DNA from: Amphiscolops sp. MND2022
Taxonomy: Eukaryota
Length of the DNA stretch: 64,000 bases
Assembly (NCBI GenBank): GCA_964187785.1
Contig: OZ076418.1
Location: 27,094,001-27,158,000 of the forward strand
Reading direction: 5' to 3'
Shown here piece after piece: positions 6,868-63,192 of this stretch (positions within the stretch are counted from its first letter, which is position 1; each line of letters begins with the position of its first letter). The position numbers and the translations under genes are program-made. The notes under the pieces are model-generated. The model did not search any database. It saw only the letters and a list, made by a program, of their open reading frames with translations, and was not told where the DNA came from.

Positions 6868-7336
6868 CTCCGTCAATTGTGAAGTCAAATGGCAGCAACG
6901 ATGACGTCATCTAGGTTGTGGCGCCCATCATGCGTCCCGAAATATCAATGTCACAGAGCGTCGTCTTTGGAGTCACGTATGATTCAAAATGATTCAATGT
7001 TTTACTGCAGTTTGCTATTTGAAAACTCATACTGCAAAGTTCTAATACTTTTTCGTGAGCAGAGTTGTTCGGGTAAAGTTTTTATTCGGTGTATCTGTGG
7101 TTTTTTTGACAGTATAAAGATACAATTTGTTGGCCGTGACCATGTAACATCAAATAGTTTACTTGTTTTCGAAGCTCGGAAGCTTCATACTACTTTTCGT
7201 AAGCTTTGTTTTTGAGTGGCTGTAATAAAAGCACGTCTTTGCTACTCAAAATGTTTTTCCTCGCAGGGCTTGTTCTCAACTTTGGCTTGCGATCGAAATA
7301 AAAATTTTGTTGAATCTGTTTTCATTTTCTTTTTTC

Positions 7337-8151
7337 AGGAGTCGGAAAAAATTTTCGACTACTTATGCAATCGTGTTGTTTTTTTTGTTTTCTTTTCTCC
7401 CGACCTTTTCATGAAAATTTCAAATTTCTCAAAAACTGTCCATACGATTTTCACGAAATTTTGCACAGTCATTCTACACCCAAAGGGGCCCCTGCATGTG
7501 CAAAGGCATCAAAATCGTATGGCTGTGATGTGAGAAACATAGCCAAAATTAGCCCAAAAATGGCCAAAAAACAGCCATTTTTCGACTTTTTTCGATTTTC
7601 TCAAAAACTGTCCATACGATTCGAACGAAATTTTCTACAGTTATTCTACACCATATTAGAGTCCTATATGTGCAATGGCATCAAAATCGTATGGCTGGGA
7701 TGTGAGAAACATAGCCAAAATTAGCCCAAAAATGGCCAAAAACAGCCATTTTTCGACTTTTTTTGATTTTCTCAAAAACTGTCCATACGATTCGAACGAA
7801 TTTTTCTACAGATATTCTACACCATATTAGAGTCCTATATGTGCAATGGCATCAAAATCGTATGGCTGGGATGTGAGAAACATAGCCAAAATTAGCCCAA
7901 AAATGGCCAAAAAAACAGCCATTTTTCGACTTTTTTCGATTTTCTCAAAAACTGTCCATACGATTCGAACGAAATTTTTTACAGATATTCTACACCATAT
8001 TAGAGTCCTATATGTGCAATGGCATCAAAATCGTATGGCTGGGATGTGAGAAACATAGCCAAAATTAGCCCAAAAATGGTCAAAAAAGGCCCATTTTTCG
8101 ACTTCAGAAAAAAACTTAAGCCGACTCCTTTACCGCACATGCAGCTCTGGT
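7337..8151 (+). mobile_element. Non-autonomous Helentron/DINE-1-like element (family A) with ~4 internal 173-bp tandem units
   Basis: Subterminal inverted repeat AGGAGTCGG (7337) / CCGACTCCT (8121), 3' stem-loop, T-rich flanks; units recur at about 7431, 7603, 7776, 7949. Confidence 0.7.
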
Positions 8152-8423
8152 TTCTTATTTGTTCGAATCTTATAACTATAGCTAATAACAAATCAAAAAG
8201 CGATTGAAGCACAAAAAAGGTGAAGTAACCGTAACTGGAATAGCAAACGTTTTGCTAGCTAACGTGTAATAGGATTAAAGAGAACTAACATTTTCAAAGT
8301 TGATTGTGTAAAAACTGCCCAAAAGTCAGGCGTGGAGTCCTTGTGCTCCACTGCTCATCATAGTTCAAGGTTTTAGTAGTGTGGTTTGCTAGTTTGGAAA
8401 CCTTCATTCAACGCACAGCATTA

Positions 8424-8768: not shown

Positions 8769-8868
8769 ACTTATATCTCTACTTTTAAGATGAGTATTTA
8801 TGGCTGGCGGCTGGATGCAGGAATGGAGAGCAGTCAAGTCTTCGGAACATGGATCACAATCCTCAGAT
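8769..8868 (-). repeat. 3' LTR
   Basis: Base-for-base identical (by eye) to 22677-22776; preceded on the minus strand by a purine tract. Confidence 0.92.
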
Positions 8869-8870
8869 TA

Positions 8871-8885
8871 GTTCTCTCTTTTCTT
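8871..8885 (-). promoter_or_regulatory. Polypurine tract
   Basis: Minus strand AAGAAAAGAGAGAAC directly upstream of the 3' LTR. Confidence 0.8.
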
Positions 8886-9435
8886 ATTGAAAACACAACC
8901 ATGCAATTCTCTAGTTATTGTCAGCACTGATGTTTTTGTATTAATAAGTGTTATTATAATTATTTGTTTAAAGATGGTGATCAAATAGTTAAAAGGTTAA
9001 AGTTCTGTCATAGGTAAAATAGTGTTAAGGTCAAATATTTAAGAGTTCTTTCAATCAGTTCTTTTGTCCTCAACAACGGAATGTTTCAGCTATGTTACAC
9101 TTCCTCTCATCGAAAAACTTCCGGCGTCTGAAAAAGAGCCATCATACAGTCTGAGGAGTAGTGTAGTGATGATTAGAAGCTGAAATTGCCATGTTGAGTA
9201 GTCTACTTCCAATAATTCCATTGAAAGAGCCCAAAGAGAAGAGTTTTGGAGAGCAGCACAAGTCCCAGTTTCATGTTGTGATAAAGTTGTATATTTCATC
9301 CAGTCCAGTTGAATATTGTAGAGCCAAAGATTACTACATTTATAATTTACATATACTGCAGAAGAAAATATATGAAAGGATTTGTTTTGATCAATCTCAA
9401 TGATGAATGAATGATTTAACCGAAGGTTCGTGAAG

Positions 9436-11843
9436 TCAAGCAATGGTGTCGGCTTGGTCTGCTTCAAAGTCTCCGGTATCGGGAACCTTTTGGTTAATTG
9501 TAACTTGACAGTTACTTGGGTGTTTTTTGATTGATGATTGAAGATTTTTAATGGGATGGCATTGTTTGAATGCAGTCGTCTCGTATTCAAACATTGAACT
9601 GGCCATTCTGGGGTCTAGTGGACTTTGCATGAGCACTTGATCGCAATTAGCAGATGTAGATGGTTCGTTTAGATTTCTTTTCGATTGTGAACGTGAAAGA
9701 TGATATATTCGTCCAAATTTTTTGTGAAATTTATCCTCAGCATGAGAATCAGTTGTTTCCAATTTCATCATGGGTTTAGCTCGCACTCTTTTTTTGTTTT
9801 TATCAAGTAGGGATGGAAACAATTTCGATGCCAGATTGTAGCGATGATAAATGTACATAAAGATCAAGTGCAAAGCTGTCGATACAATGAACACAGTTAA
9901 TGTCAGCATGAATGAAATTCGGAACGGAACATATTGATTAAATTCTTTCGTTAAGGCTGGTTTCAAGAGTTTCATTTCTGATGCATATGGTCTGGCAATG
10001 TCGATCATGTGTTTGACTTCACGATTCTTTGGTCCTTTTGCTAACTGTAGCTTTACCTCCCTCAATAACTTCACTCCTGCTTCAGCTTTCGATGTGTAGA
10101 ACGGTAATTCGTCCAAAGGGGGGACTTCCATAACCAATGAAGCGATAGGATTAGGCAGAGAAACTTGCAATTTTATCGGTGGAATGTGAGCGCAACTTGA
10201 TAGATCAGATCGGATCTTGATGTTGTCAGTCATGATTTGCATTCCACATGCTAAAGTGATGAGACATATGCGGCATCCGCAAAAAGAAGAGCCCTGAACA
10301 GAGGAAGATGAAACTTCACGAAGGGTAACTGCGTGAGCGGATTGAATTAACCAAATGCCATAGCCTAAGTTTGTTGCTTGTTCTATGGCAGGCAGTTGTA
10401 CAATGGTAGTATCACATACTGCAAGAGCCTCCGATGCTGTACTGGAATACAAGGTGGCTAAACAAGACGAGTGTCCCATCTCTGTTGGAACAGACTCTGA
10501 ACAGATTCGGTAACGAGATGAGCCGAGACAATGCTCAAACTGTTCAGCAGAGAGGACAGATGACTCCATGTGATCCTCCGACAAAGCTAAATATGGAGCT
10601 TCGATGTTCCATGTAAGAGCCGACTGGGGATCGTCTGGATACGGCATCGGAATTAATTTTGCTTCATAGACAGTAAAAACGGTTTGCTTAGATGCTAGCG
10701 GGATGTTCAGGGTCATCAAAAGACCTTCATTAACCGTAATAGCATCTGCTAAGAGCTTGGAATCGAAGTAAGATAGCAGATCTGACATTGGGATAGCTAA
10801 AGACAGCCTATCCTCAGCCGTCGCCTGCTTCATTGCAACACTTCGTAGAATAGCCAATAACGATTCCGTTGGTACCAAAGACATAGGTAAATGACCTCTA
10901 AGTATAACCGGAATCGAATTTAAGATGTTCATGCGGAATGCAAATAAGGCCGCGCGATAGCTCTTAACACTTGCATGTATCATTGCTAGTAGCGAAGATA
11001 AGGTATCGAAATTGAAGTTTAGTTGTTGATTCGAAAAAAGCATTTGGTTGCAGTCGCGGAGTACATGAAAATTATGCTCAAAAACATCAAACTGTTGTTG
11101 AATAAGTGCCCAGTTTTTGTTCTGCGTATCAACAAGTTCCCTTTGGATGTCGTGAAGGGCCGCCAATTCATTTTCTACCATAAAAATTTTTTGTCCGTAG
11201 ATGTTGTAAATTCAGTTACATACTGGGTTAAAATGTCCTGGAAGTCTGATAGTTTGCGTATGTTCTCGGCATTTGCCTTCGCAGCGTCTTGACAGGAACC
11301 AAAAATGCCTTGTAGTCCACAAGAGTCGGAACTACCGAGAGCCACTCCTCCTCCAAAAAGGCCGACTGCAGCAAGAGCCGCTAGTCCCACTTGGGATCCA
11401 CGTCGGTGGCGAGTATTCCGCTGCTGTTGAGGAGGGGAGAGAAACATTGCTGTTTCATTACGTAGGAAGGCAACATCGAGTTCCGCAGTGTGGATTTCAG
11501 TTTCTATTTGTTGTAACATCCAGGTGACATTGAACGGCGTTGAATTTGTTGAAAAGTGACTTGAAAAGTCCAAGGGACAAAAAACAGATGGAAGTTCCCA
11601 CATCGACGCAAATTTGGCCATTAAGGCCACAATATCTGGTTTAAGTGCGAAGTCATAAGTCGGAAAGGGGACTAAAAATTCAGTTTTTATAAATTTCTCC
11701 GCGATCAAGATTTTACTGCGTTCATGGAACAGAACGCCCTTTTCTTGGATTTCGTTCGGGTTATTGGAGGCTTCTAAATTAGAAAGCCACTCACTTCGAA
11801 CTGAAGCAGGGGTGAAGAAAACCAGGAGGAACAAAACTAACAT
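9436..11843 (-). CDS. env: Envelope fusion glycoprotein, class I / baculovirus-F-like (~802 aa after correcting a 1-nt frameshift)
   Basis: Signal peptide MLVLFLLVFFTPASVRS; furin site RHRR (11400-11411) followed by fusion peptide GSQVGLAALAAVGLFGGGVALG; heptad-like helices; Cys-rich core; TM ISFMLTLTVFIVSTALHLIFMYIY; ~135-aa tail. The two ORFs join by adding one base to the run at 11182-11186 (DKKFFMVEN). Confidence 0.88.
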
Positions 11844-12222
11844 GGATCCGTTTTTCTTCGTGTTTTTCCCCCTTTTTTTATAATGGATAAAATCGAATAA
11901 TTTTCGAATGAATACTGTAGCAACTAGTTCGATCGATCTCAAATGCAAGAATGGCACTTTAGGTATTTTTGGGCGGGGTTTGTGGATATTTGAAAGATCA
12001 CAAGAAATGTGATTCCATTTGTTTTCAATATCCGGTGCCCTTTTGATGTTGACAAAATTCGAGTTGTGAAAGTTTGTTTTGACAAGTCATGTTTACGGTA
12101 CTAGTGATATTGGCGTTGTTTAGTTGCACGTAGGTAAGTAATGTGACATCCTGTATTTAAGTGGACATAGGACAGCAAAATGTCATCCAAGTCGAAAAAA
12201 GATTTTCGAGTATTTCAGCTAA

Positions 12223-12633
12223 ATGAAAGTCCTGTACTTGGTTTCGGCATTCTGCCTTTATGCCATTGTTGAAACATGTGTGCAAAGGGAGTGGCGAGGC
12301 CACAAAATACTGTGTTGTCCCAACGGGACTGCTATGGAAGTCTCGCCTGGTCAGAATGTCTGGGTGACACAAAAGACAAGTGTATGTGGCGCATCGAGCA
12401 TCGAAGAAAAACCTGACTCTAAATCGAAAAAAGTGATGAAATGGCTAATCGCCCTACTTGTATTAGGAATAGTTGCGTGCTGTTGCTGGCGGAAATTTCC
12501 TATCCAAAGAATTACTGCAATGATAACAAAATGTTGTCCAACCAAAGCTGACGTGGTCGAAAACCCAAAACTGGAAGTAAAAGTCATCAAAACTGAAGCA
12601 GTTGCGAAACTTCCACGCAGCCAGTCGTTTTAA
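12223..12633 (+). CDS. Small type-I membrane protein (136 aa), antisense accessory ORF
   Basis: ATG start; signal peptide MKVLYLVSAFCLYAIVETC; ~50-aa Cys-containing ectodomain; TM WLIALLVLGIVACCCW; basic cytoplasmic tail; possible leader intron GTAAGT 12134 to TTTCAG 12218. Confidence 0.7.
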   Translation: MKVLYLVSAFCLYAIVETCVQREWRGHKILCCPNGTAMEVSPGQNVWVTQKTSVCGASSIEEKPDSKSKKVMKWLIALLVLGIVACCCWRKFPIQRITAMITKCCPTKADVVENPKLEVKVIKTEAVAKLPRSQSF

Positions 12634-12805
12634 GTGACAAAAAACTAGGTTTTTGTTTTACGTTATGTGTGAGAATAATTTAGTTAGTGTGATAACTGAA
12701 CAATCTGAATTTGACAGCATACTTTTACGTTTACAGCATACGTTTACAGCATACTTTGAAACTTGAAAGGATTTAATGCTACTTGTTTTGATAAAAAACT
12801 TGGCT

Positions 12806-12814
12806 TATAAAAAG
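12806..12814 (+). promoter_or_regulatory. Possible TATA box for the antisense HHCC-OTU transcript
   Basis: TATAAAAAG upstream of the spliced gene; motif only. Confidence 0.3.
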
Positions 12815-13368
12815 ACCGGAGCCAAATCTGCTAGTTTACAAGAAAAAAAGTGGATATTATCAAGGTTAGAAGATTCAAGAGTTTAAATGAACAAAGAACA
12901 GAATGAATTGGTCATAAAAATTGATAGGCATTAAACAAAGCCATCCGCAGTTGGCGGAATTTGATGAAAGTCCGTAAGCCGCCAAATTTCGGGACAGGAA
13001 AATCCTGTCTTTGAAACAGAAGAACCAGCTCGATCCATTGAGGAGAACCGTAGGCAAGCTGTCGTAAGGTGCCATCTGATAGGATCAGCGAAATGCCCAT
13101 CGTTTCATCAGTTTGAATGCGTATAATTGGGAAAGCCGTGCCATTGTGGTACACTCCCAATTGTAGTGAAAGGCAAAAGCCATGTTTTGTAACATTACGT
13201 GAAAAGATCGAGTGGAAAGTAGGTAAAATGATGTGCCGAAGCTTAGCTTAAATTCAAAAGTAAAGAATCGAAAGAAAGAGACAAACTAGACAAAACGCTG
13301 TACAAGAAGAACTCGTCGATGAATGATATTGACTATTTTGTTTTGTCGGTAAACAGGAGTTAAATGTC

Positions 13369-14755
13369 ATGACAAAGGAACTTGAGTCAAGTGTAACTAA
13401 CGCAACATGTGTTTGTTTTAAATCTCGAGAATGCAGCGAAAAGATTCATTATGAATATTTGCTAGATAGAATGGAACGTACATTATACAATGCGATCTCT
13501 GAAATGAAAAGAAACAACGAAGTGAACAAATTAGTCTGCCAAACAAAGGGGCAAAAGGATTTATGGGGGAAACGGCTCAAGCGGTTCACTCTCAACGAAA
13601 TGGGGGCTTTATGCTGGAACGGTCAAAGGGTGCCAACAGTCGAAGAGTTAACCACTATCTTATGGCCTTTTCATGAAACTGAGAAAAGGCACATACAAGA
13701 CGAAGAATCATTGCGAAAAGTATTATCCGACAAAGGGTACGTTTTGCCAACATTCATTGGAGGTCTCGAACGGGCTGTAAAAACGTAAGTAAACGGATTA
13801 GAGAAAACAAAATTAGAAAAGACAATAACGAAGTAACCATTTTCATAGATTCCTGCACGATTGTCCAGAATGCTTCTGGACGCGACAAGAAGGCTATCGT
13901 TGGCAGAGAGCAACAAGTGTGGCTCGAAGGGAGCGACAAAAGGCCTGTGAAAAATTAGGTCTAGTCTGGCAAAAACTGACGGACGAGCCAGAAAATGGAG
14001 CAGTAATTGGGCTAGGTGAGCCGCCGATGGCAACTTGTAAATCGATTCTTGCCCAAGGTGGTGGAAAATGTTGGGCGTCAAGTGTATATTACTTGCTGAC
14101 GGGGAAAAAAAGTGGTAAGTGTATGATGGAAAACCATCATGACGACTGCAACTGGAAACGGAAAGCAAGAGAGTGATGGTGTTTCAGATAAAAAAAAGGA
14201 CAGCGCTGCATTGAAGCGGATCCGGGATACAATCGGGAACCACATGAAAACCCCTGAACTTCAGAAGTCAAGTGTAGAATGCCTGGAGTACGCTCCAAAT
14301 GAATTCGAACTCGATGCCGTGCTGCGGTCAAATGCCGACATCAGTGAGCCTTGGGTAAGACCAAATTATTCAACGAAAAGTTTAAACAGGAATTTCAGAA
14401 AAATGCACAGCTTTCAGATGTTAGGCACGGCCCAGGTATTAGGCTGGGACATGCTAGTCTTCTGGAGATACGCAAAAAGAAAGGGATGGATTCGCTATCC
14501 TGCAAAAGCGAGGAGTCCAGCACCAAGGGCCGCCTTTCTCTTCCATGTCATTCACTCAGAGAGAGAAAGAAAATTTCATTGTGAACCACTAGTTGAGTGG
14601 CCAATAGAAAGGTTAGTAGGGACGTAAGTGATAAATATAATTTAAAAAACATCGAAAATGATTGAAAAAGTATTTACAGCAACGACGTAACCTTTGATGG
14701 GAGTGGGGAGGCCGAAAAGTCGCCCTCTAAAAAGGCCCGAAAATACTGGGAGTAA
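13369..14755 (+). CDS. Four-exon antisense gene: integrase-type HHCC zinc domain fused to OTU-like cysteine protease (397 aa); exons 13369-13784, 13849-14114, 14188-14623, 14680-14755
   Basis: Three GTAAGT...YAG introns (64, 73, 56 nt) whose removal gives one continuous 1194-nt ORF. Intron 1 removal completes H-x5-H...AVKTFLHDCPEC. OTU-like motifs: ILAQGGGKCWASSVYYLLTG...IRDTIGNHM, MLGTAQVLGWDMLVF...WIRYP, FHCEPLV. C-terminal basic KSPSKKARK. Confidence 0.8.
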
Positions 14756-15220
14756 TCATTTCATCAAATGATCTCATTTCAAAATTCATAAAGAAATGCC
14801 CAACTCAGGAAATCTAAATCTTTGTCGATTAAAGTGGTTTTAAGCGAGTATAAGGCAAGCTTACCGCTGGCGGGCGGTTGTGAAACAAGTTTTATAGTGT
14901 TTTTTTTCTAGAAAAAACGTCGAATTGTGGAAATTATTGTAGGGAGACATGGAATCTCGAAGTGCGCCGTACGACCAGAAAAATTTTTTTTTGATTTGCA
15001 ATGCGACCAATGGGTGTGCCAATCGAAAGAGCGAGGCAAAAAAGGGCGGGACGCCGAAAATCCAAGTCTGCTGCGAAAATTTAACACTGAAAAAACTTCG
15101 GTTGAAAAGGTCGATTTTCATGTTTGTTGCGTTTTTGGTAATACGTTTAACGGAAAGAAGAGTAAAGAGCGACGTCTCGTGACTAAGAAGCGATTGCATG
15201 ACCCCAAGAAAGAGCGATCA

Positions 15221-15660
15221 TTAACGTGGGGGCTGAATGATTGTAATAGTAACCGGCGACTGTGAAAAAATACGATATAAGATTGAGAAAACAGTTGGCC
15301 AATGTAATCGGTCAAGACCGCTTCCGAGTCGCGGGATGCTAAGTGCCCGAATGTTATGGCGCTCTAAATGCTGACGAAGGGCCATCAAGCTCAACTGAAG
15401 CGTTTCGTATGTAGGTTTATGATAAAATCGTTGTTTGGTCACTAAATTGTGGATATAACGTTGATTTTTTTTTGTCAAAATAAGAGACCAATGAGCCTGA
15501 AGGTAAACTGTTTTTTGCATTGAATCCGAACTGACGGAGCTCTGGATAGCGGTATGCGATTGCGGAAGCAAGGCCGCGTTTCATTTGAAAATCGGCTGAA
15601 ACACAGTGAGCTATAGACTCTGTAGAGTCTAGGATATTCGAAGAAGAAAAGCAAAAGTTT
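15221..15660 (-). CDS. TARG1/OARD1-like macrodomain at the Pol C-terminus
   Basis: ESIAHCVSADFQMKRGLA ... HNLVTKQRFYHKPTYETLQLSL ... LSIPRLGSGLDRLHWPTV closely parallels the TARG1 pattern LAHCISED.MGAGIA...LITK.....KPTY..L..SL...MPRIGCGLDRLQW. Confidence 0.88.
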
Positions 15661-18600
15661 GGATGATTGTCGGAAGAAATAGAATTTAAAACATTGGATG
15701 CGGACAGTCTTTTCTTCAAATTACGGAAATTGTAGCGTGCTTTTACTTCCGTTTGGTGCTGGAGATACGCCTGAGGAGATTGCGGTGTCAGCTGGTGCGT
15801 TGGAGATTGTTGTACCCGTGGGCTTTGACTAGAATGAGGCCGAGTGCGTTGACAAGATTCAAGTAAGATCGTGCGCTTATCTGCTTTTGGTAAGCTTGTG
15901 CCTGGGACCTGAGTCAACTGTGTTCTATGTGGAGGTTGTCCGTAAGTTTTTGGTCCACGTCCAATAAAGACTGGTACTGTTTCACGATTCTCATCGAAAT
16001 TCAAAGTGCGATTAGTGCGAGATGAGGTAGTCGGAAGTTTCGGACGGACGGTACGTGATGCTTGCTCGGCCGGGGTGGGTGTAAATGCACCTGCGTGGCG
16101 TGCCTGGTCATCATCTGAAGTCGCTGGTGGAGAGGACGGAGAATCTGTGGATTCATCGTCAAGATATGGCACAAGCGCTGGTTGTTGTTCTTCGTCATGG
16201 GCTGGCAGTGCGGGAATTGCTGGAGCTGCTGCTGCAGCTGGTAGGGGTGGAACTGCTGGCCCTGGAGCTGGTCCCATCGGGATAACAGCTGGTGCAATAG
16301 GAAAACTAAGCGAAACCGTAACCGGTGGAGGCTTTTCTTCGTTGTGAGCGACACTAGTTTCCTCTGAGGGAGGTAATAGAAGAGTTGGAATGCTTTCATC
16401 GAAAATAGCTGGTTCTCCACGGAATCGCCCGAGCATAGGGTCGCGTTGAAATTTATCCGGGTCAATTTGCGGTAACTCGTCAACTTGATATTGCGGTACA
16501 ACCGGTCGGAGACGAATGCGATGTACGCATTGAGTGTAGTTTGTACCTACCTTGCGAATTATGTAATTTGAATTTGTTAAAACTTGCTCGACGCGATACA
16601 ATGGTAGCCAGATAGGAAGGAACTTACTGGAAAAATCAGACTGCGTCATTAGTTTTGGATTCAAAAGAAGACAAAACGAGATATGTTTTAGAGGTTGCGC
16701 TTCAGCTTTGTAATCATAATATGCGCGGTATCTATTATACATTTCAGTCAATTTACTTTTCGATTCGGAAAATTTTTGTAGCATGGCATCCTGCAATGCA
16801 AGCACATATTCCGTAGTCGGTTGCGCACGTTCAAGCGAAGTGTTATTAAACCTGAGATCCAATGGTTTCAAAGGTTCACGACCGTGGAACAATGCGGTCG
16901 GGCATGTCCCTATTGCAAAATGATAAGAAGTATTATGAATAAATGCAGCAAGTTGCACGTATTTGTACCAGTCATTCCACTGCTCTGTGGTGTTCAACTT
17001 CAGAATTCGTTTGAGGGCGCTATGCGAGCGCTCCACACTACCTACCGTTTGAGGGTGTTTTAGACTGGCATGTTCCAATTTTATTTCCAAAAGTTTAGTC
17101 AATTCGTGCATCAATTCACTCACAAAAGTAGTACCCAAGTCGGATAAAATCGTTTTTGGAAGATAACTATGACGGAAAAATATCGACGCAAGTTCTCGTG
17201 CAACAGTTTCGGATCTCCCATTAGGAAGTGGGACTGCAAAAAGATATTTTGTAAAAACATCAATACCCGTAAGAACATAACGGTAGAGCGGAGACTGTAA
17301 CCGACCGACAAGGTCAATTTGTAACATTTCGACCGGGTAAGATTTCAACGAGGAGACCGGTTGCAACGAAGTTTTCAGATTTTTGCTTGGTACACGTTTC
17401 AGTTGCAAGCATTGTAGACAGTTTTGGATAGTTGACGTTAAGTATTCTGTAAAATTCGGAAAATAAAAGCGTTTTCTAAATTCTTCAACCGTCTTTTGAT
17501 TCCCATATGGCCTGCTGTCGGCGAGTTATGCAAGCGGTAAATTACTTCGCGCCAAAGGGATTTCGGAACGCAGTACTGTTTGTGTTGAACCTTTCCTTGG
17601 TCGTCATAAAAAAGTCGGTAGAGGACATTTTCGTCGATTATGAGACGTGGAAATTGTTTCCGATACTTTGGTAAAGCGATCGGTAAATTTGGCGACATGT
17701 CCGGTGAACCTCGGTCTTTCCATTGCATTACCTCACGAATGGTCTGGTCTTGATTTTGTACTAGAGCGAGGTCTATTGGCTCTGACCGGTTGGGCAAATC
17801 ATCAAGAATGTCGCTGAATTCTTCTGACGAGACTAAGTTTATTTGATTTATTTGACAGAAAGAGTAAAAGCCAGTGATGTCAAGAGACGGGGTAGTCTGC
17901 GCTTCGGTTGTTTTCTGTAAAAACTGTTCGTAGAGACCAAATTCTTTCAATTGTGAAATTAGGCGTTCGTCAGCCTGATCGTCAACAGATTCCGGAAAAG
18001 GTGATCTATCCAAAATATTTGATAAAGCGACATCAGGAGATTTCGCTTCGGTTGCTATTTCGATATCTTTAATAGGTATACGATCAGTTAATTTGAGAGA
18101 CAGGGTTAGAGTAGGGTCTGTTTGCATTCGTGATAAAAAATCTGCGGCCGAATTCGCTTTACCAGGAATATGAGCAAGGAGAATGTTGAAAGACAAAACT
18201 CTATCCAAACAGTTCCATAACGATGGATGAATACTTTTAGATTGGAAAAATTGCGTGAGACTACGGTTATCGGTTAAGACTAGCACAGGTTTAGTTGCGC
18301 CCCATATAAAATGTGCAAAATGATATAAGGCGAAATAGAGAGCAAGAAATCCTTTATAGTAAACCGAAAATTTCAATTGCGTGGGACCAAACAATCGAGA
18401 TCCAAAGGAGACCGGCGCGTATACTTTTTTCTCTTTTCCTTGTTGATCTAACAAGTAGTCCTCAATCATGAGGACAAAGCCTGTGCCATGGTAACTAGCT
18501 TCACAAAGGAGTACGTATTGGAGACCAGGTTTTGCCAATCGCAAAGTAGAGTTGGTAGCATTTCGTAAATCAGTTTTTAATACATCTAGTGCTTCGCTAT

Positions 18601-20728
18601 GTTCTTTCGTGGTTTTAAATTCTACATCTTTTCGCAAAAGTTTGTAAAATGGTAGCAATTTTTGACCCAAATTGGGCATAAATGAACGGAAAAATTGGAC
18701 AAATCCAATCAATCTCTTCACTTGTTTAACTGTTTCTGGCTTCCTGATTTTTTCAAGGAATTTGTTTATTTTGTCTGCTTCAGGTGAGATGCCTTTAGGA
18801 GTTATAGTGCTTCCCAAATAATCAATTTTGGTTGTCCCAAATTCGCAATTGTGAGCAGACAATTTTAATCCCGATGCTCGCAGGCAATCAAATATTTTCG
18901 TTAAAGCGGGAATCATTTCATCAAAGTTGTTTACTCCCCTGGCAATGTCGTCCATGAATTGAGTACAAACATTGGCAGCAAGACATTTATCTAGATAATG
19001 TTTGACGAACGAACTAAATCCAGTGACGGATTTGTTCAGGCCTTGGGCTAAACAATTATAGGCAAATGTACGTGAAGCGAAATTAAATGGCAGCAATTGT
19101 ACCGAAAGGTCATCCGCCATTTGAACGCAATGGTATGCTTGCGAACAATCAAGTTTACAAAATAGCTTCTTCCCCGCAAAATGGTTTGTCGCATCGGTCA
19201 TATTTGAAATCGGGAAATTGCTATTTAAGTAATCATGGCGTAGGAGGTGGTTGACTCTTCTGAGATCGATAAGTATGCGAAGCTTGCCAGATGGTTTGCG
19301 ATGTACAAATATCGGACTAGAATATTTGGAATGTGACAACGTAGTTATGATGTTAAAATATTGTAATAACGCCAATTCAACTAAGATTTCGTCACGCAAA
19401 TGAATCGGTGCTGGTGGACCTTGAACGTATACCGGAAGTTGATGAGCAGGCGTTAATTTGATCTTCAATTCTGTATTATACCCAACATCGAAGCGATGTT
19501 TTGCAAACACGTCATGATATTCAACAAGAAAGTCCTCCAATTTTGATTTTTCATCAGCGCTCAAAACACATGTATCCCACGTAAATTTTTGCAAAAATTC
19601 TCGTCTATCGTGTGAATTAGATTTTGGATTTATTTTTTCAAAACGTTGAAGTTGCAAAATTTGGTCGTAAATTTCGCGTTGCAACGGTGACAAATTTGAA
19701 AGATCTGTACATGTTTCGGGAGTCGGAAACCAAAGTTTTGAGTAATTTGGGGGCGGTCGACCATTGTCAGTGTCAATTTTTTGAAAGTGTATATCTTGAA
19801 TTAGCTGATTGAGTTCATTTTCAAAATCGTCAGGTTTTCTCATTTTTGCGAGTGCCAATAATTGTGGATCTATTTCAAGGAGATAATCAGCTTGTGACTC
19901 GCTCAAAATTTCGAAATGTGCAATTTGTTTTTTGCTATTTAGCGTAATCTGGGAATCGGACAAATTGATCGCTGATATGTATATTTTATTGTCATTATCC
20001 ATCTTGCTCAGAGACGAAGTTAATGCAATATTGGCTTTTTCCTCCAGATTCTTGTTTGGAATGACTAGTCCTGTGTAATTAGCGAACTGGTCAGTATATT
20101 CATCTAAATAGCATTCAAGGAGGACTTGTTGCTGCGGTCCAATATTGACTTTTTTGCCCAATAGGATAGGTATATTTTTCATTTTTTTCACAAATTGGCG
20201 TTTTTTTCCAGCGTCCGGTTTCATTTCATTGAGTTGAACCGTAAAGTCGGGCAGTTTCAGTAAATTGTTTTTGGGGTCTATCGTGATATTCTGTTTTTTA
20301 AAGAAAGAGTTTCCCAAAATTACACTATTCATTTTTGGTAGTACAAGGAAACTGTCTGTAAATGAATGAATTCCAATACAGAATGTGAGATTCACCTGAT
20401 TATCAACTAACACTCGTTGTCCTGAAGCCATACGGACAGACGTAAAGTTTGGAGTTTCATTTTTAATTAAGTCGGGATGACTCAAACGTAATTCGTTGTA
20501 TAAATTTTGAGGCATTACATTAGCGCAGGCGCCTGTATCAATGAGGGCTCTCCGGCGAATGTTCGGAGAAAATTTCAATTTAACGTAGGAAAGATTTTCA
20601 CCTTCAAGAGGCAAAACAGCGCATATATCTGGCTCTTTTAATTCTATGTTACATGTGTGTGGCTCATTAGACTGGTTTTCATGTAGAGAATTAGGCGGTG
20701 GAGTCTTGTGCTGCGTTTTTAGTTTTTT
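15221..20728 (-). CDS. pol: Pol polyprotein PR-RT-RNaseH-integrase-Pro-rich linker-macrodomain (~1835 aa; two compensating homopolymer frameshifts)
   Basis: PR ALIDTGA; RT YSSPIFVHRKPSGKLRILIDLRRVN, KLDCSQAY, QFMDD; RH LCEAS..TDNRSL..HIPGKANSAADFLSR; IN HNSPTAGH..CLQC, QIDLVG, SDLG, VERSH. Apparent frameshifts at 17494-17497 and 15465-15473. Confidence 0.95.
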
Positions 20729-21973
20729 GGATTTTGATTGAACGGCATTTGAGCTCCTCGTTGTGGCGGGTTACCTTGCGCAGTACAATCTTTTGCTAGA
20801 TGATTCGGATATCCGCAATTATAGCAAGTATGTGTTGATTGTTGTGTATAAGGCATGTAATGCGGGTCCGGAGTAAAACTTCAAATGTAGTTTGCGATGA
20901 ACCTTGATTGGAATTTCCTTGTTGAAAGTTTTCCTGATTATGATTTGACCATTGTTGCTGACTATTTTGATTCTGATTAAAATTTGAATTTTGGTAATTT
21001 TGATTTGACTGATTGTAATTTCTGCCGTAATTGTTCTGCCAAGGTCGTCCTCGACCTTGGTAACCTCGACCTCGGTTTCCACGGTTATTGCCGCGATACC
21101 GACCACGATAATTTCCTCGATTTCCGCGATAGCCTTTTGAGAGCCGCGTTGCGAATTGTTTTGGTTTTGCTGATTTTGTAACTGAGTGGTAAAATTCGTA
21201 GCTTGCTCTTCTAGTTTTTTGGACATTTCGTTCAGTCGATTGTCCATAGTTTCTTGACTATGGCTCAATTTTGTAAGAGCTGTAACTAAAGTATCAGATA
21301 CTGAAGGGCGCACTTCACTGAAGGCATCCATAACCGAATCTTCAACCTTACAAAGGTTATAGATCGAAAGTTGTTTCCGAGCGAATATACACAAATCTTC
21401 AACCGTTGTATTTTCCGGTTGTTCCAAAAGTTTCGTTCGAAGCCAGCCCGGCATATTTTTTATAAATTGACTCCGAATCTGAGTGGAGCGCGCTTGTTGC
21501 GCTGAATGAATTATTTCGGCTCTTCTGGCGGTTTCAGAATCAAATCGTGTTTGTTCGACTGCTGCGTCCGGCGCGGCACCGTCAATTGGTGCTACTGCGG
21601 GTGGATTTGGGTCGGGATAAGCTTTAAGTGCTTTCGTTTGTAACGTGACTAAAAAATTCTCTGGATTGTCTGTTTTGGGATCGAATTTTAAGTTTTCCAA
21701 TTTAAGAACATGCAATTCCTGAAGTCTTGGATTACAAAAGTGATCACGAAGAGCTGTCAAGGAGTGGTCTAAGTCCGCACGTGTTGCTACCGGTAGTGTT
21801 TGAAAATAGCGGAGCGCAGCGTCTCTAAGATGAAGTTGTAAAAAGTTGGCCTGTTGCGCCTGCGGTACCGCAGCTACTGCTAAGATACTTCGTAACAAAT
21901 GTTCAAATTCACGAAAGTTTTCCTTTTCTAAACCCGAGTACGGTGTTAGCGAGAGTTGAGGTAAAGCAGCCAT
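20719..21973 (-). CDS. gag: Gag (~418 aa after correcting two 1-nt frameshifts) with RG/NQ-rich region and CCHC zinc knuckle
   Basis: ATG 21973 MAALPQLSLTPYSG..; capsid-like region; RGYRGNRG repeats in the shifted frame; CYNCGYPNHLAKDC at ~20785-20826; stop at 20719-20721. Confidence 0.88.
20722..20728 (-). promoter_or_regulatory. -1 programmed ribosomal frameshift heptamer A AAA AAC (gag to pol)
   Basis: Gag ends CCA AAA AAC TAA; the -1 frame is open directly into the protease. Confidence 0.75.
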
Positions 21974-22662
21974 GATTTTAAAGTTAAGTGTAAAATAGAG
22001 AGTGACGAATAAACAAACTAAGATTGTAGTGAAGAAAAAATTAAAAATTTGTCGATTAAAGTTTGTAAAATGCAGTCGAACACTGATGTGTAGTTTGTAC
22101 TTCGAAAACTGAACAACGAATATGATACTTTCAAGTCGAAACAAGAAAGATTTGAGATCAAATTTATAGCGTTTTTGCAACAATTACAATTTGCAGTGAA
22201 AGGAGGAAATTTGCAAGTGGAAAAAAGTAAAAAGTTTGCAGAAATTCACAGTTGAGTTTCAAAAAGAGTAACAGCTGTGAGACACAGTTCAGTTGAAAAT
22301 GATAACATTTTAAGCACTCATGAAATTCGAAATCCACACTATATCACTTTAATGCTTCAGAATTGAATCAAACTCACCGACTGTATTCGTACTGGCACTT
22401 TGAAGTCTTCATGAAATTGAATACAGATATCGTAGCATCAAAGTTCGCCCAATTTGAGAAAGTCACCAAAAGTCATCGTTGATTGCTGTAGTTTCCAGTT
22501 TCTGCCGTGCCTTGTTTGTTTCAGTTATTACAGCCTCGTGGATCTGGTGCTGGTCGTGGATGATGTGACTGGAACACCGCGGGTGGTTGGTCGGGGGTCT
22601 CGTGTGAGCTTTTCAACACAAAAGGGAGAGTTCTTCTCTGTATTGCATAGTGAGGATTGTTT

Positions 22663-22676
22663 CGCTCCTGTCACCA
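22663..22676 (-). promoter_or_regulatory. Primer binding site, probably tRNA-Leu
   Basis: TGGTGACAGGAGCG immediately after the 5' LTR; resembles the Leu-type PBS TGGTGTCAGGAG. Confidence 0.75.
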
Positions 22677-22776
22677 ACTTATATCTCTACTTTTAAGATG
22701 AGTATTTATGGCTGGCGGCTGGATGCAGGAATGGAGAGCAGTCAAGTCTTCGGAACATGGATCACAATCCTCAGAT
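22677..22776 (-). repeat. 5' LTR
   Basis: Identical to 8769-8868; followed by the PBS. Confidence 0.92.
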
Positions 22777-31749: not shown

Positions 31750-34700
31750 GTTAGTCGAGTCCATCCTTTCAAATTTCAAGTAACATAAGAGCTCCATTAT
31801 CATTTCCGCCCATATAAAATGGGGGAGAAAAATCATGATGTGTGTTGCGTTTTTTTACAAAGTCTGCCAAAACTCCATCCTCGTGACGAGTGGATCTCCA
31901 TCCACTTGACTATTTAGTTACTTAACTATTTTTTTTATAGCGGAATATATCCCGGTGCTTAGCGGGCGTCTTGTTTGAAACTGCTCGTCATTTTTTTCAC
32001 TCTCTACATTCATAATTAAATGGAAAGGGTGGATTCACAACTGCCATAAGTGCAACTAATTGAAACATTAGTTTCACGGATAATGTTTATCAACGCAAAC
32101 GAATCTGAACGGCTAAGGACTTTCATTGTGTTTGGTAAAGTTACTTGACAACTACGAATAGTCACTTCCTTTATCGGTAAACTTGCCTGTTAGCTACTGC
32201 GGTATTGACTGAAATCTCAAATGTTGACCTGAAAACTGCAAAGCGCCCCGGAAGGAGCAAACCTTATTCATACTTTCGTTTATGCTGTGAGAATCTTGAA
32301 GTTTCGACGATGGAACTAATTTTAACTTCGAATGTTTTTACGCTTTCATTCATCTCATTTAGGTGCTTGCGGACAAATTGCAATGCTTGGAGCCGGAAGG
32401 AGCCAATTACCCTTCTTTAGCCAGCCACCTTCTACAGTCTGCTTTCATTCGACACAATGCAAAGGATGTGAAAGTATTGGTTGCATGTTGCCTCGCTGAT
32501 GTTTTACGTCTCAGTGCCCCCAATAACTGCGTCGACTCTGACAACGATCTGAAGGTTTGAATATCAAACGTTTTTAAGTTTTTAATTTTTAGGAGTCGGA
32601 AAAAATTTTCGACTACTTATGCAATCGTGTTGTTTTTTTTTCTCCCGACCTTTTCATGAAAAATTCAAATTTCTCAAAAACTGTCCATACGATTTTTATA
32701 AAATTTTGCACAGTCATTCTACACCCAAAGGGGCCCCTGCGTGCGCAATGGCATCAAAATCGTATGATTGGGTTGTGAGAAACATAGCCAAAATTAGCCC
32801 AAAAATGGCCGAAAAACAGCCATTTTTCGACTTTTTTCGATTTTCTCAAAAACTGTCCATACGATTCGAACAAAATTTTCTACAGTTATTCTACACCATA
32901 TTAGAGTCCTATATGTGCAATGGCATCAAAATCGTATGGCTGGGATGTGAGAAACATAGCCAAAATTAGCCCAAAAATGGCTAAAAAACAGCCATTTTTC
33001 CACTTTTTTCGATTTTCTCAGAAACTGCCCATACGATTCGAACGAAATTTTCTACAGTTGTTCTACACCATATTAGAGTCCTATATGTGCAATGGTATCA
33101 AAATCGTATGGATGGAATGTGAGAAACATAGCCAAAATTAGCTCAAAAATGGCCAAAAAACCGCCATTTTTCGACTTTTTTCGATTTTCTCAAAAACTGT
33201 CCATATGATTCGAACGAAATTTTCTACAGTTATTCTACACCATATTAGAGTCCTATATGTGCGATGGCATCAAAATCGTATGGCTGGGATGTGAGAAACA
33301 TAGCCAAAGTTAGCCCAAAAATGGTAAAAAAAGGCCATTTTTCGACTTCAGAAGGAAAAAGACCTAAGCCGACTCCTTTACCGCACATGCGGCTCTGGTT
33401 TCACTTGCTTTTCATCTGATATTATTGAAATCTCAAAATGTCTACTTTTTTTCAGTACAATTCTTCGCACGATACTGAATAATTCAGATATTTGTTCGGC
33501 AGTGACTGCAAGCGTGAGAATTAAATTTCTCAAGCTGCCGACGACATTTCAATACTCGTGCGATGGAACGAGCGAGTGGTAATTATGCATTCGTACGCTG
33601 ACGTCATTGAGATGAAGCGAATGAGTGTTAATTATTCGTTCTCGGAGAGCTTTGCCTGCATGCAAATGCGAAACTTTGTCTACGCTTAGTAGTTTTATTT
33701 TCTTTAGTCCGAGGAGAATTCAAGGAGGTGTAAACTTGTACAGTGATTAATTGTGCGCTAAACGATGATTAAACAGTGATATCAACGCCTCGACAGTCCG
33801 AAAAACAGCCATGGTAACGCAAGGTAGCCACGGACCATCCGGCGTCGACGCCAACGACTGGCGCAGGTGGCTTTCACATTTCGGTCAACCATCCTGGAAC
33901 CTCTGCAAGGCTCTTGCGGCATTTGCCCGGAGACTCGCAACAGATCAAATGCATGATCTAACTCCCTACAACGCATGTCGTCTCATACCGCTTGACAAAA
34001 ACCCAGGTGTCAGACCAATCGGAGTGGGCAAAGTCATCAGACGCATAATTGGGAGGAACATTCTTCGATGCATCGGGAACGATCTCAAGATCTTGGGCCA
34101 GAATAGGCAACTCTGCCTTGGTCAAAAATGTGGCATCGAACACGCCATTCACAGTCTACGTGAGACGTTCGAGCTGCCAGAGACAGAAGGGCTTCTCCTG
34201 ATTGACGCCAAAAACGCGTTCAATAGTCTAAATAGGGATCTGGCCCTGAAAAATATACAGAAAACCTGTCCATCCATCATAACAGCGCTCCGAAACTCAT
34301 ATGGTTTACCTTCAAACCTTTACGTGAATGGGAAAACTCTCTTGTCGCAAGAAGGAACTACTCAAGGCGACCCTTTGGCTATGTCCATGTATGGCATTGC
34401 GCTTCTACCGTTAATGGACTTCGTGAACGAAGAAGGAGTGCTTCAAAAATGGTATGCTGACGATGGCAATGTAGCCGGTAGCATCGAATCGCTCCGAAAT
34501 CTCTTCGAAAAACTGAAGCTCCACGGTCCCGCATTTGGATACAACATCACTAAATGTCATCTCATCACGAAAGATTCCTCCATTGACAAAGCAAAAGAAC
34601 TCTTTAAAGACGAGGATGTTGAACTAGTGGGAGGACACCGTGTACTGGGGTCCGTTATTGGATCGTCCGAGGCCTGTCACGCTTTCCAGTCCTCCAAACT

Positions 34701-37700
34701 CACTGAGTACACGAACATTGTAAACAAACTTGCGTCACATGCGAAAAAGTCACCACAGAATGTCTATCATGCATTTACAAAAGGTGTTCAACACAAACTC
34801 ACCTTCCTTTCAAGAACAACACCTGACATGGAAAACACACTGCAAAACACCGAATCTCTCTTAACGACGAAACTGATCCCTAACATCACCGGCCGTGGTC
34901 AGTTATCTATAGCATAACGTTCTCTTTTCTCCCTACCGCTCAGCAAAGGTGGGCTGAATATCCTTTCACCCGAAGACAGAAGAAACGATCTGCAGTGGTC
35001 AAAGGATGTTACTTCTCATCTAGATGAAGAGGATTTAACCACCGCTGAAGCGAAGCAACACTCAACAGTAAACATGATAAAGAAACAGAAGCAAGAAATT
35101 CAAAAAACTAAGCTTGAAGAAGTCAAATGCAACTTGAATGACGAATAACGACACGCAGTTACACTTGTTTCGGAAGAAGGAGCATCCAGCTGGCTAGCAG
35201 CCCTCCCACTGAAACGCTATGGTTTCACTCTTACGGAGTCTGAATTTCGGGACGGTCTTGCGCTGCGCTACGGTTGGGAGCCAAAGAACTTACCTGCAAA
35301 ATGCCCATGTGGTGAACCCTTCACTGTTGCCCATTCCCTACACTGCGGAAAAGGAGGCTACACTCACATGAGACATGACGAAATACGCGATACGTTCGCA
35401 AAGATAATGAAAGACGTTTGCTTCGACGTCGAGGTGGAGCCGAAACTTCAGAGGTTAGAAGGGGAATCCTTCGAATATAAATCAACTTGCACTGAAGATG
35501 AAGCTCGTCTCGATATCAGAGCAAATGGACTCTGGGATTCACGATTCTCGAGAACGTATTTTGACGTCAATATTTTTAACCCGCTGGCCAAGTCCTGTCC
35601 GAAAGAAGTAAAGGAAGCGTATAAATATCATGAAACTTTGAAAAGACTGATGTACGAACAGAGAATCCTTGATGTGGAAAACAGCTCATTCAATCCTCTT
35701 GTCTTCGCGTGTTCAGGAGGCGCAGGTCCTTCAGCCTCGAAAGTTATTTCCCGACTTGCTCTGAAGATCAGCGAAAAAGGACATGACAGCTACTCGGACG
35801 CCATAGGATACAGCAGGACGCAAATTAGCTTCGCTTTGCTACGCAGTTCCGTGCTATGCCTCAGAGGATCTCGATCTACTCGCCGTCAAACTGAGGAATC
35901 ATCTATCTCTGCAATGGTTGAAGAGGGAAGGTTGTCGTGACTTACCTCGACGATCCTAATCTGGTGATTCCTGCGATATATTTACAGCCGATGTTTTTTA
36001 AAATTATGATACGATGCCCTAATCTATAAATCTCTCCTCCACTTGATGTTCTTGGTGCTTGTTTCATTCAGGGGACCGTTTTTGACACTGTATGGAGGCT
36101 CTGCAGCTTGCAGTGATCTGGCACCTTGCCTATCTTTTTCTGACTGCCCATGCTTCAACTCGGGCTAATTCCATTTCATAAAGACCTTTTTAAAATGGTT
36201 CCAGTTCGCACGGTCCTTATTTTAATATTTTATTAAACAGTGTATTGGTATTCCAGATATGATTCTATTATTTAAACAAACACTGAATTATACCTTTATT
36301 AAAAACAAAATCATCTTGGTTTTAAAAACAAAGCAGTGTAATATTAATGAAGGATTAAAGCAGAAATAGTACTGTGCCCCGGAGAGGCCTATTTGTATGA
36401 ATGAGAGTCTTGAAATCAATTTTTTCTTTTGAAAGTCACTGAGGTAGCATCCTTTGTTAGGGAAGGGGCGGTGTCTTTTTGGTACGAAATACGATTTGGA
36501 AAAGCTTCAGTCTTGAAGGCCTTTGATAGATGATAAAAACCGTATTTCGCCTGATTTCTCTAAAATGAAAGTTTCAAAAAATGCTAAAATCGCTTCAAGA
36601 AAAGAATTGTATGTGTTATTAACAATATTCGCCCCATATTCAGTGATTGAACTACCATGCAAAATTTAACAAGCCGGGAACGGCCCAAGTCGGCGCCATA
36701 TCCAAGGCTCAAAAATAGCAAAAGGAATTGAAAGTATCAAGTATCCTCTTCTAAAGTACCCGCATGAGGAAAAAATTGAAAAAAAAACGTTTTTCAAAAT
36801 TTTTTTGGTCCGGTAAGTCGCATAGCGCCGAAAAATGTAAAAGGGGACCTCAAAAAAGCTTAATTAACCTCTATCTCAAGTGCCAGTAGAAGTAGTGTGG
36901 CATTTAGTGTTAGTTCAAGTCAGCTTATAAAGCTTATAAAATCTGTCACTTCGTTGGTCTTAAAAAAAAGTCACTGCTATAGTCTGCGTTTTTCTACGAA
37001 AAGCGCCGACTAAAAATTGGCAAAATCATATCTTGGACATTTAACAAACATGTATCAAAAACTGGTGAAAGCTAACAACATAGCCATATAGAGAATCTCT
37101 GTTGAACACGCCATTCACAGTCTACGTGAGACGTTCGAGCTGCCAGAGACAGAAGGGCTTCTCCTGATTGACGCCAAAAACGCGTTCAATGGTCTAAATA
37201 GGGATCTGGCCCTGAAAAATATACAGAAAACCTGTCCATCCATCATAACAGCGCTCCGAAACTCATATGGTTTACCTTCAAACCTTTACGTGAATGGGAA
37301 AACTCTCTTGTCGCAAGAAGGAACTACTCAAGGCGACCCTTTGGCTATGTCCATGTATGGCATTGCGCTTCTACCGTTAATGGACTTCGTGAACGAAGAA
37401 GGAGTGCTTCAAAAATGGTATGCTGACGATGGCAATGTAGCCGGTAGCATCGAATCGCTCCGAAATCTCTTCGAAAAACTGAAGCTCCACGGTCCCGCAT
37501 TTGGATACAACATCACTAAATGTCATCTCATCACGAAAGATTCCTCCATTGACAAAGCAAAAGAACTCTTTAAAGACGAGGATGTTGAACTAGTGGGAGG
37601 ACACCGTGTACTGGGGTCCGTTATTGGATCGTCCGAGGCCTGTCACGCTTTCCAGTCCTCCAAACTCACTGAGTACACGAACATTGTAAACAAACTTGCG

Positions 37701-62160: not shown

Positions 62161-62845
62161 ATGGCGAGCGGGTTTTCCGAAGACGACTTACTCGATGCCG
62201 AGTTGATGGAGGCTTTTTCATGTTACGATGACGATGACGTCACTGACGATTCTTCTATCTTAGCCAATCAGAACCGCGAAAACTTACCGCCTAATCTGAG
62301 CAATATAAACAGTCAGCTTTCTTCGGCCTTTGAAAAGAGTCGTCCAAAAACTTCTGAAAAACCAGTGACATCTGAATCTAGTTCAAAAAACACTATCACA
62401 GAAACTGGCAAAGGTGATGAATTATCTGAAAATCTGAAGCTGTTGAAATCGCTGGATGAAAAACGAAGCCGAGTTCTTGAAAATTTAAAAAAGAGCGGAA
62501 TGGCAATTGGAACTACAAGTTCTTCAGACTTTAGTGGTCCGAAATATTTTGACAATCAGTCTGGATTCACAATAGGAAACCCGATAATATCGAAAGAAGA
62601 GCTGAACAAAAAAATGGAAGGCAAGAAAAACTTCAGACTTTCGACGTTGAAAGACAAAATGCGAATGCATACTCTTTCAGAGGTCAATTTTGTTGTGTTC
62701 GGGGTTGTTTCCAGACGATACGAGCCCAAAAATGCTGTAAATGGCAAGAAGTTCTGTTCTTTTCTGTTGTCGGATTTGGAACATACCAGTTTGAGACTTT
62801 CAGTTTTTCACGAAGACTACAAAAACTTGTACAAGGAGGGTGAAG
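62161..62845 (+). CDS. MCM10: MCM10 first coding exon (N-terminus and start of OB-fold)
   Basis: SGFTIGNPIISKEELNKKMEGKKNFRLS..FVVFGVV..NGKKFCSFLLSDL matches the MCM10 internal domain; donor G|GTTTGA. Confidence 0.85.
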
Positions 62846-63192
62846 GTTTGAATGCCATTAACTAATTAACTATTGACAATTTTCATTTCCTAAAAGAATT
62901 TTTCGAGGAAAGTGGAAATTACTCATTCGTTTGGTTAAAAAATAGCAGAACTTATAGCATTTGTGACATTAATAGTTTGTCAGAAGATCATGATGTTTTA
63001 TGTAATATTTTCAGTGTTATCGTTATATGCTTTTCGGAGTTCATCATTTAGTTTTTATGGAGTTTTTTTTCAAAATGTTGAAACTGTTGTATATTGAAAC
63101 GCGCATTAAAAGGGGTGGGTTCTTATGCTAAAGTAAACTTGAAATCTACAGATTTACTAAAAATGTACTTGTTAGTTCAAGATATTTTAGTA

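Follow-up and report, generated by a model that had tools for sequence, protein, structure and literature searches.

We analyzed a 64,000-nt stretch of DNA from Amphiscolops sp. MND2022 (assembly GCA_964187785.1, contig OZ076418.1, positions 27,094,001 to 27,158,000 of the forward strand), hereafter the window, which is eukaryotic and gap-free. The minus strand of the window carries a Ty3/gypsy long terminal repeat (LTR) retroelement with gag-like, pol, and env-like genes. Opposite these genes, between pol/ORF3 (open reading frame, ORF) and env, the plus strand encodes a multi-exon gene whose predicted product joins an N-terminal His2-Cys2 zinc motif to a C-terminal OTU-like domain, and which we call the OTU gene for brevity (Table 1). 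For comparison, we retrieved the DNA of L001-L009 and L011, ten additional copies that are either insertions or fragments.

Gene model and splice structure

The initial annotation of this DNA had proposed a four-exon antisense gene in which the removal of three introns (13785-13848, 14115-14187, and 14624-14679) from positions 13369-14755 leaves one open frame of 397 codons. We reproduced this frame with its exact coordinates, with GTAAGT donors and YAG acceptors at its splice sites, and the positions assigned to the zinc-motif residues (H 13672, H 13690, C 13862, and C 13871), the candidate catalytic Cys (14069-71), and the His (14577) were likewise exact. While the multi-exon antisense structure stood, the intron count did not: a three-way DNA alignment together with nine further gene models refined the gene to five exons and four introns encoding a 338-amino acid product.

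The intron at 14355-14417, which had been raised only as a possibility, proved to be real and conserved across copies, and the ORF fragments of the family terminate at SEPWV, i.e. at this very site. It is in frame and free of stop codons only in the window copy; elsewhere, it is 67-103 nt long and either out of frame or stop-bearing. The conserved last donor is the GTTAGT at 14612, 12 nt upstream of 14624; both donors are in frame, with 14624 being an alternative restricted to the window lineage. The start codon at 13471 is conserved in L001, L002, L006, and L008, and the 34 codons that an in-frame ATG at 13369 adds in the window copy are not conserved in L001 or L002. Because intron 3 is real, the last donor is 14612, and the start codon is 13471, the product is 338 residues long.

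The position of intron 1 is kept in L001, L002, L003, L004, L005, L006 (twice), and L008, where its length ranges from 61 to 85 nt. When introns were placed in the further copies with a simple spliced-alignment script, GT..AG introns were recovered at the same four positions and in the same phases in L001, L002, L003, L004, L005, L006 (two tandem copies), L007, and L008. Directly before the start codon, a TTTCAG or TAG was present in 7/7 copies inspected; this YAG acceptor just upstream of the ATG implies either a 5′ leader exon or trans-splicing. We found no support for the extra upstream exon that the initial annotation had suggested (donor 13219, acceptor 13356), since the region before 13471 is not conserved as coding sequence. 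A small minus-strand ORF lies at 12870-13160.

Table 1. Positions in the window of the OTU gene, the retroelement that carries it, and the neighboring genes.
Feature	Position	Strand	Description
Splice-acceptor-like YAG	13455-13470	+	4-9 nt before ATG
Exon 1	13471-13784	+	Conserved ATG, N-terminal region, zinc-motif His pair H68 and H74 (338-residue numbering)
Intron 1	13785-13848	+	64 nt, GTAAGT...ATAG, phase 2; separates the HH half from the CC half
Exon 2	13849-14114	+	C110-x2-C113, conserved block W..EG..WQR..V..R..CEKLG, linker, Cys box ILAQGGGKC(179)W
Intron 2	14115-14187	+	73 nt, GTAAGT...TTTCAG, phase 1; 63-86 nt in other copies
Exon 3	14188-14354	+	Helical part of OTU-like domain, DKKKD..ALKRIR...ISEPW
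Intron 3	14355-14417	+	63 nt, GTAAGA...TTTCAG, phase 0; conserved GT..AG
Exon 4	14418-14611	+	Beta-sheet part of OTU-like domain; GWIRY; His box F-H303-C-E305-P
Intron 4	14612-14679	+	68 nt, GTTAGT...TTACAG
Exon 5	14680-14755	+	Acidic then basic C-terminal tail, conserved (S/A)K.AR.YW, stop codon
Env-bearing Ty3/gypsy LTR element	8769-22776	-	LTRs, gag-like, pol, env-like
3′ LTR	8769-9100	-	Full; related copies give an LTR of ~332 bp
Env-like gene	9436-11957	-	Two overlapping ORFs; frameshift at 11175-11181
Divergent accessory cassette	12103-14953		2.85 kb; ~77% identical to L001 or unalignable
Second antisense gene	12223-12633	+	136 residues: N-terminal signal peptide, Cys-rich ectodomain, one transmembrane segment, short tail
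Small sense ORF	12870-13160	-	~95 residues, between the two antisense genes
Sense ORF3, TARG1/OARD1-like macrodomain	15224-16004	-	Directly after pol; convergent with OTU gene; frameshift near 15465
Pol	15417-20614	-	Single stop at 17408-17438
Gag-like ORF	20819-22183	-	CCHC knuckle in relatives
5′ LTR	22677-22776	-	Truncated to 100 bp

Conservation of the gene and its association with the element

Both a word-based protein search and an exhaustive search of a representative library returned only unannotated ORF fragments as family matches, and the 29 fragments from the representative library fell into groups that start or stop exactly at the proposed intron sites. A metagenome scan added one further locus, from a JGI (Joint Genome Institute) metagenome of the coral Cyphastrea. 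In the three-way DNA alignment, the exons were 64-83% identical with no or minimal indels, and the introns were 41-63% identical and differed in length. Differences at codon positions 1, 2, and 3 were 0.16, 0.09, and 0.40, respectively, and the ratio of nonsynonymous to synonymous substitution rates (dN/dS) was 0.06-0.07, with synonymous sites near saturation. The gene is thus real, its splice structure and substitution pattern being far beyond chance, and these data show that it is under purifying selection.

The disruption of several copies could be taken to mean that the region makes no protein, and that its plus-strand ORFs are fortuitous or mark only an antisense regulatory RNA. However, a dN/dS of 0.07, the low rates of change at the first two codon positions relative to the third, the conserved splice sites and phases, and the open frames retained in diverged copies all run counter to this idea, which we consider to have been effectively refuted by the substitution pattern.

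Wherever a locus includes sufficient flanking DNA (L001, L002, L006, L007, L008, and L011), the gene runs antisense to pol, which encodes the integrase, and lies directly 3′ of it, and the same place and orientation were found at pol identities from ~97% down to ~50% in at least three assemblies. As a conserved ORF antisense to gag-pol and between pol and the 3′ LTR, it falls into the aORF-3R group, which is a positional class and not a homology family. L011 is a separate insertion of the window sub-lineage that is 96.5% identical over 14 kb and has 331-bp LTRs that are 100% identical, a 5-bp target duplication (TATAG), and all four introns of the gene. Since intron-bearing copies lie at independent insertion sites, that of L011 among them, the gene has been copied by retrotransposition; the introns survive the process because the RNA genome of the element is complementary to the gene, such that they are never removed from the template.

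The initial annotation had pointed to Ginger-type terminal inverted repeats (TIRs) and a target-site duplication (TSD) as signs that the segment had inserted independently. We found neither bracketing the gene or the accessory cassette around it, with only two weak, chance-like inverted pairs present in 11900-15400. Divergence in the cassette greatly exceeds that in the backbone of the element, and the cassette hence has its own history, as might be expected if a gene of the host, or a nested transposon of other origin, had come to lie inside the element by accident. Nevertheless, the constant place and orientation of the gene in every related element examined across this range of pol identity, the lack of TIRs or a TSD, and its movement with the element in L011 make such an accident highly improbable.

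The zinc motif and the OTU-like domain

In OTU proteases, the catalytic Cys comes first and is followed by a His with an acidic or amide residue at +2. Every intact exon-2 sequence retains Cys179 within GGG.C, and H303-x-E305 (FH[CVA][ED]P) is kept in nearly all exon-4 fragments; His303 lies 124 residues after Cys179, with the acidic residue at its +2 position. An AlphaFold model of the contiguous exon 3-intron 3-exon 4 read-through, computed with 36 homologous fragments, had a predicted local distance difference test (pLDDT) score of 64.5 and consisted of four helices followed by four strands, with His303 in the last predicted beta-strand. When this model was compared to the PDB using Foldseek, the top 50/50 matches were OTU domains, including OTUD3, OTUD1, the nairovirus viral OTU (vOTU), DUBA, A20, Cezanne, an OTUB-like protein, the turnip yellow mosaic virus (TYMV) protease/deubiquitinase, and OTULIN. 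The best match had an E value of 0.04 and a probability of 0.93, and the best template modeling (TM) scores were 0.38-0.41, so that these model-based matches are individually weak but collectively specific. As a control, the exon 2-exon 3 read-through of L001 gave a model with a pLDDT of 52 and Foldseek matches that were scattered and unrelated. A viral fold search of BFVD returned mixed multi-domain matches, some of them to OTU-bearing viral proteins.

Taken together, the modeled fold and the conserved motifs support an OTU-like fold for the C-terminal two thirds of the protein. The initial annotation's reading of the gene as an OTU-like protease is supported by the fold match, for which it had proposed a comparison with OTU folds, and by the conserved Cys and His-x-Glu, with sequence profiles giving no OTU match. 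We infer deubiquitinase activity for this domain. Alternatively, it could be a protease that processes itself or a polyprotein, or it could lack activity and work as a binding scaffold, for instance a regulator or repressor of the element that acts through the zinc domain; the atypical Cys loop (GGG.C) and the lack of an OTU profile match would suit such a role, and some viral OTU or papain-like domains do process polyproteins too. However, the product is free-standing and has no polyprotein context, and the Cys, the His, and the acidic residue at +2 are kept under strong purifying selection, as expected for an active triad. We therefore judge a function other than deubiquitination to be quite unlikely.

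The N-terminal motif, H-x5/6-H-x35-C-x2-C, is kept in all intact copies, as is the W..EG..WQR block that follows it. We regard the motif as real, and the His2-Cys2 domain probably binds zinc. The initial annotation had identified it as an integrase HHCC domain; while the motif itself held up, homology to the integrase domain drew only a marginal signal. The H-to-C spacer is 35-36 residues, compared to 29 in the element's own integrase and to the canonical H-x3-7-H-x23-32-C-x2-C. No Integrase_H2C2 match (PF17921/PF02022) was obtained with Pfam on the exon pieces including exon 1, the read-through ORFs, or the family profiles, and a BLASTP comparison of the N-terminal part with the pol of the element was likewise negative, with no similarity to its integrase. 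A hidden Markov model (HMM) of 117 Ty3/gypsy HHCC regions scored ≤6.6 bits. With hhalign, the H, H, C, and C residues and an upstream VP aligned in register (P 0.01-0.02, probability only 2-4%), and 4/150 column-shuffled controls equaled or beat the score. Homology to the integrase HHCC zinc domain is thus weakly supported and unproven, and the further suggestion that the zinc domain docks onto the integrase and protects it from the proteasome is purely speculative.

The combination of a zinc motif, introns, and an OTU domain had led the initial annotation to propose a captured Ginger1 transposase gene without its DDE core but still with the H2C2 finger, introns, and a C-terminal OTU. The make-up that it attributed to Ginger1 agrees with the literature: these transposases combine YPYY, H2C2, DDE, GPY/F, and a C-terminal OTU or Ulp1 domain, have 0-4 introns, and are abundant in the cnidarian Hydra (PMC2836005). 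The order from zinc motif to OTU domain is the same here, and one family member comes from the coral (Cyphastrea) metagenome, both of which would fit a Ginger1 origin. By contrast, Pfam and motif inspection found no DDE (rve) domain, consistent with the core-less protein initially described, and also no GPY/F or YPYY in the 338-residue product; only ~65 residues separate the zinc motif from the Cys box. Neither TIRs nor a CCGG/CCGT duplication was found around the gene or cassette, the likeness of the zinc motif to Ty3/Ginger-type HHCC domains is marginal, and the Pfam OTU profile, which recognizes the OTU domains of Ginger1 (PMC2836005), misses the pieces tested here. By these sequence features, the protein is not a Ginger1 member. 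Descent from Ginger1 is possible, but capture of a Ginger1 gene is in our view an unlikely account of its origin.

We instead favor, with moderate confidence, the reading that the OTU gene serves an env-carrying, endogenous retrovirus (ERV)-like Ty3/gypsy family as a functional accessory gene and encodes an OTU-fold protease with a putative Cys179/His303/Glu305 triad. Several observations weigh against this reading. The Pfam OTU profile (PF02338) went unmatched at E values up to 10 on the exon pieces and the natural read-through ORFs, including those with the Cys box, and PDB sequence and profile searches with the exon pieces and alignments A3 and A5 found no OTU domain, with only noise, such as GDF5, being returned. 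The fold match covers a partial domain without the Cys helix at TM-scores of just 0.38-0.41 and E values ≥0.04, the piece with the Cys box folded poorly (pLDDT 52), and its Gly-Gly-x-Cys loop departs from the usual Asp-Gly-Asn-Cys. In addition, the closest sister copies of the window gene are disrupted (by a stop codon plus a 2-nt deletion in L001, by a 1-nt insertion in L002, and by the loss of one nucleotide from an A-run in L011), and the window gene is intact in an element whose pol, env, and 5′ LTR are damaged. The disrupted sister copies indicate that the gene is dispensable in cis, and it may act in trans.

If the OTU gene functions as such an accessory gene, transcription of its mRNA would start at an antisense promoter, and splicing or trans-splicing would join a 5′ leader to the acceptor before the ATG. 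The protein would then strip ubiquitin, or a modifier that resembles it, from proteins of the element or the host, acting in trans to favor replication or to blunt host restriction.

Accessory cassette, neighboring features, and comparison with known systems

Two ORFs make up pol in the window. Pfam assigned rve to the ORF at 15417-17408 and, to the ORF at 17438-20614, protease, reverse transcriptase, and RNase H domains together with the beginning of Integrase_H2C2 and a weak dUTPase match. The ORFs at 11957-9436 had no Pfam or PDB sequence match, and we read them as encoding an env-like fusion protein based on a signal peptide and an RHRR site followed by a hydrophobic, Gly/Ala-rich, fusion-peptide-like stretch; the gene is intact in L002 (5905-8313), where it forms one 801-codon ORF. 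The window copy of the element is damaged in its 5′ LTR, pol (one stop), ORF3, and env.

Other genes and ORFs accompany the OTU gene. The macrodomain ORF was found in eight loci (L001, L002, L003, L004, L006, L008, L009, and the window), i.e. in every copy with DNA at that position, and was convergent with the OTU gene at all of them. Its intact L001 copy (L001:11744-12526, minus strand) matched human OARD1/TARG1 in the PDB (2eee/4j5r, E 4e-24), and Pfam Macro scored only 17 bits on this ORF. The second antisense gene, which is predicted to encode a transmembrane protein, is kept in L001, L002, L005, L006, L008, and L011, with a TTTCAG acceptor 4 nt before its ATG. The small sense ORF is open in L002, L006, L008, and L011, and the window copy lacks the ATG present in L002. 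Within a single element, L006:5385-9934 contains a 2.28-kb tandem duplication (97% identical), through which the antisense transmembrane gene and ORFx each occur twice, as does the 5′ portion of the OTU gene.

Outside the cassette, the window backbone (8769-12102 and 14954-22776) is 94-96% identical to that of L001, with a synonymous divergence (dS) of 0.19-0.40, whereas the dS of the OTU gene is ~1.5 or saturated. RNA-editing hypermutation was ruled out as the cause of this divergence by an unchanged transition/transversion ratio (1.28 in the cassette and 1.31 in the backbone, taken as the same). The divergence of the cassette is much older than that of the backbone, which points to a mosaic element formed by recombination between lineages, with the accessory cassette recombining as a module. 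By analogy, the convergent TARG1-like macrodomain would be a de-ADP-ribosylase, and its pairing with the OTU-like protease resembles the macrodomain and protease pairs of RNA viruses. A broader and more tentative idea, which we hold to be possible but somewhat doubtful, is that the macrodomain, the OTU deubiquitinase with its integrase-like zinc domain, and the transmembrane protein form an invertebrate ERV cassette that acts as a countermeasure module against host defense and is swapped between lineages by recombination.

Elsewhere in the window, the element and other repeats lie between two arrays of a 172-bp satellite (7325-8154 and 32580-33402), which share 94% identity and are separated by 24.7 kb. 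A 2.97-kb tandem duplication (34138-37108 and 37104-40074, 99.9% identical) contains reverse-transcriptase ORFs of another retroelement. Host exons lie on the plus strand at 52341-54260 (PDS5 cohesin-associated protein, Pfam E 6e-68) and 62161-62865 (MCM10 OB-fold), and no tRNA or Rfam matches were found in the window. L007:1-426, ~9 kb from another family member, holds an ORF for a double-jelly-roll capsid-like domain (PF21738), possibly as part of an insertion of viral or Maverick/Polinton-like origin.

Descriptions of animal LTR retroelements usually give gag-pol, to which some elements add env, and, to our knowledge, antisense extra ORFs are known mainly from plants, with no function assigned to them. 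In the literature searched, including a 2026 survey of env-carrying metazoan Ty3/gypsy elements, no OTU gene has been reported in an LTR retroelement, and an intron-bearing gene for a zinc-motif and OTU-fold protein is apparently new for this class of elements. Such genes are probably under-counted, since neither ORF-based annotation nor Pfam detects the OTU gene. Its conserved introns, strong purifying selection, and predicted enzymatic fold, together with its location next to a macrodomain gene, suggest that some invertebrate ERVs may be 'complex' in the retroviral sense, manipulating ubiquitin and ADP-ribose signaling. The gene would also connect retroelements with two other groups that carry OTU domains, namely DNA transposons (Ginger1, Helitrons) and RNA viruses. 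In addition, it illustrates, as a clear case from nature, that a retroelement can retain spliceosomal introns when they lie in antisense orientation.

The protein resembles the OTU deubiquitinases (OTUD1/OTUD3/OTUD5 and the nairovirus and arterivirus vOTU) in the predicted fold of its C-terminal two thirds, the order and spacing of the catalytic Cys and His, the acidic residue at +2, and the location of the His in a C-terminal beta-strand. It differs from them in showing no sequence-profile similarity, in having GGG.C for DGNC, in its N-terminal His2Cys2 fusion, and in being encoded by an LTR retroelement. RNA viruses carry pairs of a macrodomain and a papain-like or OTU protease, and the element likewise has a de-ADP-ribosylase-type macrodomain beside a deubiquitinase-like protease in one genome; here, however, the two are separate convergent genes of a retroelement, and their functions are predicted.

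OTU domains also occur in the mobile elements Ginger1 and Helitron/Helentron, of which Ginger1 shares the H2C2 finger and introns as well (PMC2836005, PMC6431247). Unlike these proteins, the product described here comes from a separate antisense gene of a retroelement, without DDE, GPY/F, Rep/Hel, or TIRs. Antisense extra ORFs located in the interval from pol to the 3′ LTR, and conserved in the majority of a family's copies, have been described for maize Grande (gene23), rice RIRE2, Silene Retand, and Botrytis Boty (brtn); these are reported to show no clear similarity to other proteins, save an SMC domain in PvRetro13 (PMC7264820). In contrast with them, the OTU gene belongs to an env-bearing element of animal type, its four introns are conserved, and it encodes a recognizable, predicted enzymatic fold. 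A further parallel is HBZ of human T-cell leukemia virus type 1 (HTLV-1), likewise a spliced accessory gene that runs antisense in a retroviral-type genome (PMC7264820, PMC8622228). The two genes share an acceptor just before the ATG, suggestive of a distant leader exon, although HBZ is a basic leucine zipper (bZIP) regulator rather than an enzyme.

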